From contig NW_019217892.1 of assembly GCF_002571385.2 (NCBI RefSeq), positions 577,614 to 639,510 of the forward strand: 61,897 bases of DNA, written 5' to 3'. The DNA is from Stylophora pistillata (lineage: Eukaryota). The notes beneath the pieces are model-generated. The model made no database searches. It saw nothing but the letters and a program-made list of their open reading frames with translations, and was not told where the DNA came from. The position numbers and the translations under genes are program-made. This document shows, one piece after another, positions 36,181 to 44,587 of the stretch; within the stretch, counting starts at the first letter, position 1, and every line of letters begins with the position of its first letter.

Positions 36181-37191
36181 CTAATTTGGTCGTGTTTGCT
36201 CCCTCGTAAAATGAAATGCATCTTCGATTGACGGTCTCAACCTTGGCTCGGGCATCAAACAAGAACGAATCAAATTCTCTATGCAGGAGCCGCATGATTT
36301 ATTATCTGCTTCATTAAGTGTCGCGGGTGGAACCCCGTGAACGATGTTATTCAAAGTTTCAAAAATATTTTCACCTGGTCGAAGCGGAAACGCTGGTTCC
36401 AAGAAAACCATTTCGAACGCGACGCATCCCAGCGCCCAAGCATCTTGTTTGCTCGAATATCTCTCTCCTCGAATTCTCTCCGGGGCAACATAGATTCCGT
36501 AAAAGGAATCTTTACCATCAACGCATACATTAAGCTCTGTTTCACTAGGAGTGTAAATGAGGAGATTGTGGAGCAAAATATCTCCTGATTTCGAAAGAGA
36601 CAATGTCTTGCTTTGGATTTCCGTGTGCACAATCTGACGTCTCTGTAAATACCACAAGGCATCGCAGATTTGATGCAACATCTTCCACAAAAGTCCCTCG
36701 GAAAATGTCACTCCTGCTTTGCGATATTCGTGGACCAGATCGTAAAGACTCGGTGAAAATGGCTCCAGGACGACTCCTATAGTTTCTCGTTCCCTGAACA
36801 AAACCAGTACCTGCATAATGTTCTTGTGGCGTATTTCGGCCCATCTCTTAAGGAGACGCGAAGAATTTGTAGAGTTGAAAGTCTTGGTGCTGATGCACTT
36901 GAGTAGAACCTTAGAATTATCCAGCAAACTCCTGGTTGGATAAATACAATGAACCCGCATATCTCTGGAGAGATTCAAGTTTTGTGCCTCGAACTCTCGG
37001 AAGCTGAAATCCGATGTCAAAAAGTCGATTAAATGTTGCGGTAAAGGCAGTTTTTTACGCGCTTTTCGAAGTCGCCGCAATCCGGTGTTTTTGATAATCA
37101 CAGCCCTGCAAAGTTCTCTGAGACTGATCATTTTAGACTCGCAAGTTCTCCGTCTCTTCCAGCGTATGTCAGCTTCGACGACAGAAGACAT
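36181..37191 (-). CDS. Intronless SOCS-box plus NEK-like pseudokinase fusion protein, 336 aa
   Basis: aa 22-58 SLRELCRAVI...LPLPQHLIDFL (BC box plus Cul5 box). Kinase fold landmarks: VLLK, HKNI, FSEGLLWKMLHQICDALWYL, YVAPE, YSSKQDAWALGC, RPS. HRD reads HTE, DFG reads NLL, no glycine-rich loop. Confidence 0.88.
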   Translation of the reverse strand: MSSVVEADIRWKRRRTCESKMISLRELCRAVIIKNTGLRRLRKARKKLPLPQHLIDFLTSDFSFREFEAQNLNLSRDMRVHCIYPTRSLLDNSKVLLKCISTKTFNSTNSSRLLKRWAEIRHKNIMQVLVLFRERETIGVVLEPFSPSLYDLVHEYRKAGVTFSEGLLWKMLHQICDALWYLQRRQIVHTEIQSKTLSLSKSGDILLHNLLIYTPSETELNVCVDGKDSFYGIYVAPERIRGERYSSKQDAWALGCVAFEMVFLEPAFPLRPGENIFETLNNIVHGVPPATLNEADNKSCGSCIENLIRSCLMPEPRLRPSIEDAFHFTREQTRPN

Positions 37192-38678
37192 TAGAGATGA
37201 TATTTTTTTGTTCCGTAGATTTTACTTAATTCACTGCCCTATAGGCGTTGGAAATTTTAGTACTAGTTGAGGATGATAAAATGCCCCGTTTTGAACATGG
37301 TTGTAAGTCATATGCAATTGCTTCTGTATGACAAAGCAGGTCCATGACTTAAATAGCCCTCACTGCATTTATTATTATCGCGTTGTAAGTCAGCAAAATT
37401 AGCGTATGATGTCATTTCCGTTTAGCATAAGTCTGCAAGTTCGGACTTGTAGTTTCCAAACTAAATTTATAGACTTTTACAATGACAAAAATCGTTTAAA
37501 AAATATCTTTCTTACTTAGGTTGACAGAGAGAAATTTTCTTCGAGTGCAATTGAATTATTTCTATGAGGAAATAGGTTCAAATGTAAATCAAATCAACTT
37601 CTCAACTTTTGACTCGAGTATTTTAGTGCGTGACTCTTGTCACGCACCTCAAAGGAACGCTGGAGACGTGTAAAAGCACATCTTAAAGAAATTATTCTGG
37701 ATTCCCAGAGCAAATATCATCGATATTTAAGATAAATAATTTGTTTGTGAATTGAAAGCTATTCACCAGGTAATTAAGAAATTAAACGGTATTGTCTCTT
37801 CCACGACCTATTGTAGAGATTTTCGCTGTTCTGAAAACCGCAGAATAGATAACATTTTGAGGAGCGATTCTAAGTCTATCTTCCCCCTTCCAAAAATAAA
37901 CCCTATTTCAACACAACTTGAAGGGCGATCGCGACTAGGCTTGTCCCGATTGTGCTCGGCAACTTTTTAGCAACTAATTACTTTTGATGTTTGGAGCCGA
38001 CTTCGAGCAATTTTTGCCCTTCTGAGCAATTTTTGAGCAAAATATAGGTTTAGAGCACATATCAAGCACGAAAAAGTCGACGATTTCATTAAAAAAGAAG
38101 AGATTGACGCGTAACCACGCTTGACAACGTTTCGCAAGCCTATTGCGATCTTTATCCAATATTCTAACTAAAAATGACGTTCGGCAGGACGTAAAACGAA
38201 TCTTGTGTTTTGTTCCGTCATTAGTCTTGAATCCTTAAATATCGGCCATATTTGCAAGCAATTCTTTAGAGCCTACTTTCAAGCTATTTTCCTTGACTGT
38301 TGTTGGTTATTTTTGTGAATAACGAAAAATAAAGCCTTAATCAACGTTTTTATAAAAGTAACAAGGTAGCAACTTTTGAAATTTAGGCAGTAACTTTTGG
38401 ATTTTGGCATTTCTTAGCAACTTTTTGGCATTCTAGTGGGCAAATTTCCAGCACAGGCCTAATCACGGCAGCAAAGAAGCTCGAACCTTTTGCTTTAGGG
38501 CTCGACATCAGGATTTGGTGATAAAAACCCAACAGTGACCGTGGAAGCCTGAGCCTAACTCAGCGGTGAAACAATCGATCGATATAATATCGGCCATGTT
38601 CGTTCGTTCGATGATTCAACGGAAAAGTTCGTTGTTAGACATTGTCGTATAGTAATGGCGACAAGCTAGGAATCAAAG

Positions 38679-44587
<5,909 letters not shown>

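Follow-up and report, generated by a model that had tools for sequence, protein, structure and literature searches.

Gene and Transcript

The stretch of DNA analyzed here, referred to as the window, comprises 61,897 nucleotides of the genome of the coral Stylophora pistillata (NCBI RefSeq assembly GCF_002571385.2, contig NW_019217892.1, positions 577,614 to 639,510 of the forward strand) and contains a single N, at position 6679. Its minus strand carries a gene for a protein in which an N-terminal SOCS box is followed by a degenerate NEK-like kinase domain. The gene had been picked out from the nucleotide sequence alone in an original prediction, which described an uninterrupted, intronless open reading frame (ORF) of 336 codons and proposed that its product is a substrate receptor of a Cullin-5 (Cul5) E3 ubiquitin ligase. 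The ORF was confirmed, as was every other descriptive point of the prediction, and its start is the first ATG after an in-frame stop codon. The orthologous coding sequences (CDSs) are likewise single uninterrupted ORFs and lie on long genomic contigs. The locus is a real, transcribed gene under purifying selection, as set out below.

Contigs from polyA-selected RNA-seq extend over positions 35095-37530, 35097-37395, and 34565-37452 of the window, with no internal joint in any of them. The flanking intergenic DNA at 37600-38600 is without RNA contig cover, and both neighboring genes are covered in spliced form, which makes genomic contamination unlikely and indicates that the mRNA of the SOCS-box gene is unspliced, including its untranslated regions (UTRs). 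Because two of the RNA runs resemble one data set filed twice, the sample was counted as one run with a guessed RNA label and two or more independent polyA libraries. Logan contig L001 is colinear with the transcribed region of the gene (99.5%). In two runs the contigs break at 35095-35124, with unequal depth on either side of the break; in two other runs one contig joins the gene to its plus-strand neighbor. An AATAAA motif is the sole minus-strand polyadenylation signal near this boundary, and no plus-strand signal was detected near 37400-37530. The contig break, the step in depth, and the AATAAA motif are consistent with transcription on the minus strand toward the converging plus-strand neighbor. 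A scan of positions 33900-38700 against Rfam gave no match.

The SOCS Box

The protein encoded in the window matches the Pfam SOCS box family PF07525 over residues 23-59 with a score of 28.3 bits, compared with a curated cut-off of 23.5 bits. When all six frames of the 398-Mb assembly were scanned blind with the SOCS_box hidden Markov model (HMM), the locus was one of 23 matches (E = 3.7e-5). Both predicted elements of the box are present. The BC-box consensus is (S/T/P)LxxxCxxx(hydrophobic), and the window protein has S23-L24-xxx-C28-xxx-I32 at this position. The Cul5 box that follows contains L48-P49-L50-P51, in agreement with LP-Phi-P, the element required for specific Cul5 binding (PMC4812663).

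In an alignment of 43 family members (described below) the BC-box residues L24, C28, and R29 are found in 41, 39, and 42 sequences, respectively, and Ile or Val occupies position 32 in 41. Pro-51 of the Cul5 box is present in all 43 and Leu-48 in 42, and LPLP is essentially invariant. The residues on whose conservation the assignment had been staked (L24, C28, and LPLP) are thus kept across the family. An AlphaFold2 (AF2) model of the window protein predicts three helices in the SOCS box, comprising residues 24-36, 41-47, and 52-60, with predicted local distance difference test (pLDDT) values of 85-93. A phmmer search of the PDB with the SOCS segment alone returned one chance match (E = 0.66) and is uninformative, given how short the segment is.

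The SOCS box is N-terminal in the window protein (residues 23-59 of 336) and in all its relatives, and not at the usual C-terminal position, which is found in other SOCS-box classes as well as in the CIS/SOCS family. The translation also contains the two basic clusters that had been noted as possible nuclear localization signals, KRRR at residues 12-15 and RRLRKARKK at residues 39-47. The second cluster lies inside the SOCS box, in helix 2, and may face Elongin C or Cul5 instead of acting as a nuclear localization signal.

The Kinase-like Domain

The Pfam model Pkinase (PF00069) matches residues 90-327 of the window protein with 84.4 bits, likewise above its cut-off. The closest solved proteins by sequence are NEK7 structures (E of about 2e-17), well ahead of the Aurora kinases, and a Foldseek search with the AF2 model also placed NEK7 structures first, with an E value of 8e-17 and a template modeling (TM) score of about 0.8 on the target. 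The NEK-like character of the domain, another element of the original prediction, is thereby upheld. The AF2 model, which was built from the 43-sequence alignment, has a mean pLDDT of 87.5 and a predicted TM score (pTM) of 0.85, and shows N-terminal helices followed by a kinase fold. It is less certain in the activation segment (approximately residues 211-230) and in residues 291-300. The ESM Atlas yielded generic kinase clusters only and no structure record.

Alignment with NEK7 agreed with the prediction as to both the motifs that the domain has retained and those that it has lost. The retained residues are the β3 lysine (K98), the APE motif (residues 236-238), D250, W252, and G255 of DxWxLG, and the subdomain XI arginine (R319). 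By contrast with these, the glycine-rich loop GxGxxG is absent, leucine is found at the position of the αC glutamate, and HTEIQSKT and NLL stand where a kinase has HRDxKxxN (HRDIKPAN in NEK7) and DFG or DLG. Asn-209, which takes the place of the Mg-binding aspartate, is invariant in the coral clade, and no family member has aspartate at that position.

A pseudokinase is defined by sequence as a kinase-like protein without at least one of the β3 lysine, the HRD aspartate, and the DFG aspartate. The window protein falls within this definition, with glutamate for the HRD aspartate and asparagine for the DFG aspartate, and both motifs are degenerate throughout the family. It also differs from an active NEK6 or NEK7 ortholog in having HTE and NLL and in having neither the glycine-rich loop nor the αC glutamate. 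We infer from these replacements that the protein is probably inactive as a kinase.

Table 1. Features of the SOCS-box pseudokinase gene, in window positions
Feature	Position	Strand	Evidence
Complete single-exon CDS, SOCS-box pseudokinase, 336 codons plus stop	36181..37191	-	ORF list, Pfam, ATG check
SOCS box, residues 23-59	37015..37125	-	Pfam PF07525, genome-wide HMM match, AF2 model
BC box SLRELCRAVI, predicted Elongin C-binding helix	37096..37125	-	Motif, family table, translation check
Cul5 box LPLPQHLIDFL, LP-Phi-P motif	37018..37050	-	Motif, family table, translation check
NEK6/7-like protein-kinase fold, residues 90-327 by Pfam; N-lobe strands from about residue 67 in the model	36211..36924	-	Pkinase match, NEK7 match
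Retained β3 Lys, K98, in VLLK	36898..36900	-	Present in at least 90% of family members
Degenerate catalytic loop, HTEIQSKT for HRDxKxxN	36604..36627	-	NEK7 alignment
NLL in place of DFG/DLG, Mg-binding Asp to Asn	36559..36567	-	NEK7 alignment, family table
Unspliced transcript, approximate extent; 5′ UTR about 340 nt, 3′ UTR about 1.1 kb	35095..37530	- (strand inferred)	RNA-seq contigs
AATAAA, likely polyadenylation signal	35072..35077	-	Sole minus-strand signal near contig boundary
Block upstream of the CDS (5′ UTR or promoter), conserved in Oculina patagonica	37255..37444	-	tblastx, L016:5763-5947

An Old Family in Cnidaria and Mollusca

A word-index search recovered 27 homologs of about 340 amino acids with 34-99% identity to the window protein, one of which is annotated 'serine/threonine-protein kinase Nek7-like' (Oculina patagonica). 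Residues L24, L27, R29, P51, K98, N209, and L211 and the APE motif are invariant among the 27, which also share the sequences HxEIQSKT and LHNLL. PF07525 was matched by 25 of 27 family representatives, with a best E value of 6.4e-13. An exhaustive profile search added about 20 further clusters (at the 50% level) of proteins of 300-460 amino acids with the same architecture; their matches begin at profile positions 14-29, level with the start of the SOCS box or slightly ahead of it. The named members include proteins from the jellyfish Rhopilema esculentum ('Nek6-like'), the oyster Saccostrea cucullata ('Nek6-like'), and the limpets Patella vulgata ('Nek6') and Patella caerulea ('hypothetical protein'). 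No additional named members emerged from a second word-index search with the family profile. The family therefore spans at least two phyla, Cnidaria (Anthozoa and jellyfish) and Mollusca (oyster and limpets), in which it is old and conserved; most clusters are unnamed, and no vertebrate or ecdysozoan sequence is found among the named members.

Conservation within the family is uneven. A motif table of the 43 members shows an almost constant BC box and LP-x-P next to a catalytic loop that varies from one subfamily to another, and neither the HRD nor the DFG aspartate occurs in any member (0/43), so that the table contains no relative with intact HRD or DFG. In a set of 16 deep representatives, conservation is highest in the SOCS box, with a mean identity of 40% as against 24-27% for the kinase lobes. 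A quick maximum-likelihood tree resolved at least four subfamilies. One is the anthozoan clade of the window protein, the second unites an anthozoan paralog with jellyfish sequences, the third consists of Patella and Saccostrea proteins, and the fourth, which includes a Patella protein, is marked by an inserted cysteine-rich loop. The tree included five NEK outgroups, with respect to which monophyly of the family is trivial. In searches with the family profile, the nearest proteins outside the family were those of the NEK6 subfamily and other NIMA-related kinases.

The S. pistillata genome encodes a second member of the family (L003:1408-2469, plus strand, equivalent to G000:C391). This paralog is also intact and intronless; it has 353 amino acids, 32% identity to the window protein, and a SOCS_box match of 42.3 bits, and it groups with the jellyfish sequences in the quick tree. 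It was the second-best place in the genome for a fish Nek6 query. The likely true NEK6/7 ortholog is a separate multi-exon gene (G000:C29:863752-866235, plus strand) whose exons are 44-79% identical to fish Nek6.

Pairwise ratios of nonsynonymous to synonymous substitution rates (dN/dS), determined by the Nei-Gojobori method against four coral orthologs, were 0.08-0.17, with dS values of 0.3-2.1. By segment the ratios were 0.05-0.25 for the SOCS box, 0.05-0.07 for the linker, and 0.08-0.16 for the kinase domain; only the first 21 codons of the CDS evolve fast. A dN/dS near 1 and a silent locus had been named as the signs of a decaying retrocopy. The low ratios, together with the polyA RNA-seq contigs that cover the gene, an ORF that is intact across phyla, and synteny conserved with three other corals (below), speak against such a retrocopy.

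Predicted Complex with Elongin C

Exon 1 of Elongin C was located in the genome at L006:1420-1599 (plus strand, equivalent to G000:C93); it has 60 codons and ends at the conserved SGPG before the first intron. A genome scan with the Skp1_POZ HMM at the default E value gave no match because the Elongin C gene is split by introns, and the exon was recovered at a relaxed E value. The folding partner was P0224, a full-length coral Elongin C taken from the sequence database, which within the folded part differs at one residue from exon 1 of the genome.

Residues 17-122 of Elongin C were folded with residues 10-70 of the window protein. The interaction prediction score from aligned errors (ipSAE) was 0.59 in all three runs, compared with 0.19, 0.03, and 0.00 for the controls, with at least 87% of contacts agreeing between runs and a partner pLDDT of at least 65. 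This outcome is rated as weak support. In the benchmark, 51 of 78 solved complexes and 2 of 108 mismatched pairs attained the mark; passing scores of 0.60 or lower came from only 5 of the 78 solved complexes and from every one of the 4 mismatches that passed. The motifs already favor Elongin C binding strongly; the score raises its odds a little and is no proof of it.

Comparison with Known Systems

SOCS-box proteins are classified by their substrate-binding domains. The canonical SOCS-box receptors of Cullin-RING ligase 5 (CRL5), namely the CIS/SOCS, ASB, SPSB, WSB, Rab40, and LRR proteins, share with the window protein a box of about 40 residues in which a BC box precedes an LP-Phi-P Cul5 box, and a modular combination of this box with a protein-binding domain (PMC4812663). 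They differ from it in having no kinase-fold partner: the domains joined to SOCS boxes in a review of Cul5 ligases are SH2, ankyrin, SPRY, WD40, LRR, and GTPase domains, with no kinase fold and no pseudokinase class among them (PMC4812663). NEK6 and NEK7 are the closest relatives of the C-terminal domain of the window protein in both sequence and fold. They are, however, active kinases with HRD and DLG motifs and no SOCS box, and are represented in this genome by the separate multi-exon gene described above. In the Tribbles proteins the substrate is bound by a pseudokinase domain, and recruitment of an E3 ligase falls to a short motif. The principle of a pseudokinase coupled to a ligase-recruiting motif is the same, but the Tribbles ligase is the RING E3 COP1, the motif is a C-terminal peptide, the kinase lineage is another one, and there is no SOCS box.

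The nearest functional precedent is NRBP1, a pseudokinase that binds Elongin B/C via a BC box and serves a Cullin-RING ligase with Elongin B/C as its substrate receptor (PMC12254500). The two proteins have in common an inactive kinase-like domain, a BC box for Elongin B/C, and substrate recognition, these roles being predicted in the case of the window protein. The kinase-like domain of NRBP1 is related to WNK (PMC12266122), whereas that of the window family is NEK-like. The order of the parts is also reversed, since the BC box and a dimerization region lie C-terminal to the kinase-like domain in the NRBP family (PMC12254500). NRBP1 was not among the matches of the family searches, and thus nothing here suggests that the two architectures share an ancestor. 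NRBP1 is not known to carry a canonical Pfam SOCS box with LPLP. The resemblance is one of principle, not of descent.

The original prediction recognized the architecture in no named gene. A literature search, which covered full text and few subscription journals, found no paper on proteins that combine a SOCS box with a kinase or pseudokinase domain, a result that is absence of evidence only. Members of the family are, however, already present in NCBI and UniProt under automatic 'Nek6/Nek7-like' names. Hidden under these names, the family is likely to be mis-filed in kinome and ubiquitin-ligase censuses of these animals.

A Probable Substrate Receptor of CRL5

We interpret the established architecture, conservation, purifying selection, transcription, and predicted fold as follows. 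On balance, the window gene probably encodes a CRL5 substrate receptor composed of a SOCS box and a NEK6/7-derived pseudokinase, which would make it a new, pseudokinase class of SOCS-box receptor. The BC-box helix would dock on Elongin C of the Elongin B/C dimer, and the LPLP Cul5 box, the one feature that points to assembly with Cul5 and Rbx2, would select this pair. The pseudokinase domain would be the substrate-binding module that gives specificity, and the proteins bound to it would be ubiquitinated. A box that is the most conserved part of the protein, a catalytic loop that drifts, and a fold that is kept fit a constant docking to the ligase combined with variable target binding. Binding to Elongin B/C and Cul5 and a function as substrate receptor are predictions from sequence. 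The architecture and its conservation are favorable to the receptor role that was originally proposed, and the Elongin C complex adds weak support only.

Several points weigh against this interpretation. The ligase and receptor roles are computational predictions. The SOCS box is N-terminal here and C-terminal in the CIS/SOCS family (PMC4812663). The complex score lies in the weak band and could reflect memory, on the part of the model, of solved SOCS-box/Elongin C complexes, and the predicted complex covers Elongin C and the SOCS segment. The RNA contigs are unstranded, and neither strand nor expression level can be read from them. Finally, because the β3 lysine is conserved, nucleotide binding or an unusual activity of the window protein is conceivable.

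An alternative that we consider unlikely is that the protein is a pseudokinase with a signaling or scaffolding role, such as that of an allosteric partner or a decoy within a pathway of the NEK9-NEK6/7 type, whose SOCS box controls its own stability or localization through Elongin B/C with no delivery to Cul5. The NEK6/7-like fold would suit such a role, as would an activation segment that is almost invariant in the coral orthologs and modeled with low confidence, as for a regulated or partner-binding loop. Elongin B/C binding is moreover known to stabilize some SOCS proteins. However, the BC box and the Cul5-specific LPLP are more conserved than anything else in the family, which argues for recruitment of the full ligase, beyond Elongin B/C binding alone.

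It is more doubtful that the protein still works as a kinase of an atypical kind, or as a nucleotide-dependent switch, in which the SOCS box couples phosphorylation to degradation. Some predicted pseudokinases have turned out to be active, the β3 lysine is conserved in at least 90% of the members, and the glutamate and asparagine of the coral clade are conservative replacements for the HRD and DFG aspartates. Set against this, the glycine-rich loop, the αC glutamate, and the lysine and asparagine of the catalytic loop have all been lost together, and the sequence of the catalytic loop is not conserved between subfamilies, which would be unexpected for an active site.

More speculative still, and improbable in our view, is the idea that the family consists of NEK7 mimics, in which the dead domain would still dock NEK7 partners (innate-immune receptors of the NLR type or NEK9-like activators) and the SOCS box would send them to Cul5 for degradation. 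Were this true, the family would act in cnidarians and molluscs as an ancient brake on NEK signaling of the inflammasome-like or mitotic kind, one not found among named members from other phyla.

A decaying NEK6/7 retrocopy, or a chance ORF antisense in the 3′ UTR of the neighboring gene, might be suspected from the lack of introns, the unstranded contigs, and the contig that in two runs joins the gene to its plus-strand neighbor, but it is contradicted by the dN/dS values, by the conservation of an intact ORF from corals to molluscs, by the second intronless paralog that is also intact and the likely true multi-exon NEK6/7 gene elsewhere in the genome, and by the contig break with its depth step, the minus-strand AATAAA, and the missing plus-strand signal at the other end, and we give it almost no weight.

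If the family does recruit Cul5, as the preferred reading of a CRL5 receptor holds, it would be a new class of SOCS-box receptors, and the second example, independent in its evolution from NRBP1, of a dead kinase fold that chooses ubiquitination targets. As far as computation reaches, the assignment of the window gene to a new SOCS-box receptor class and a new pseudokinase family is supported. The gene is small and intronless, which makes tests of binding and activity straightforward.

Neighboring Genes and Related Loci

The CDS of the Oculina patagonica ortholog is a single exon flanked by a MYST-family acetyltransferase gene, arranged head to head, and by a gene with a KH/PNO1 domain, arranged tail to tail. 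The same two neighbors are found in the window, the MYST gene at 38577-43133 and the KH/PNO1 gene around 34565-34648, and on a third coral contig a MOZ_SAS fragment lies upstream of the ortholog. The head-to-head order of the MYST and pseudokinase genes is thus conserved in Oculina and on a third coral contig.

The MYST gene of the window, on the plus strand, is a multi-exon gene for a histone acetyltransferase separated from the pseudokinase gene by a gap of about 1.1 kb; its Oculina ortholog carries Tudor-knot, zf-MYST, and MOZ_SAS domains. On the other side, positions 33966-35124 (plus strand) hold the terminal exons of a gene with a GT..AG intron at 34035-34564, the Oculina counterpart of which has a KH_PNO1_2nd domain. 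This gene and the pseudokinase gene converge, and their 3′ ends touch or overlap around 35095-35124; for the KH/PNO1-type gene (33966-35124) no canonical polyadenylation signal on the plus strand was seen. Within its intron, at 34400-34540, lies a short interspersed repeat of about 140-155 bp with more than 2000 first-look candidates in the genome, of which 40 scored copies are 76-85% identical, and with no match in Rfam. This repeat accounts for a word depth of about 4800-fold and for many loose ends of RNA contigs.

Elsewhere in the genome, the strongest SOCS_box HMM match (56.3 bits) is at G000:C20:202477-202593 (minus strand), in an open frame of 349 amino acids. Several other SOCS_box matches sit in open frames of 450-490 amino acids. 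These open frames look like further intronless SOCS-box genes. A separate exon on C85 (L020:1384-2250, minus strand) encodes a NEK kinase of the active type, with GxGxxG, HRD, and DFG intact. The top profile matches that extended over several stretches (P0031 and others) were rejected as special relatives of the family, as they contain 2-10 ordinary kinase domains whose scores add up. P0031 and its cluster members, from ENA contigs, are predicted proteins of about 2900 amino acids with ten consecutive protein-kinase domains, and represent either tandem arrays merged into a single gene or genuine poly-kinase proteins.
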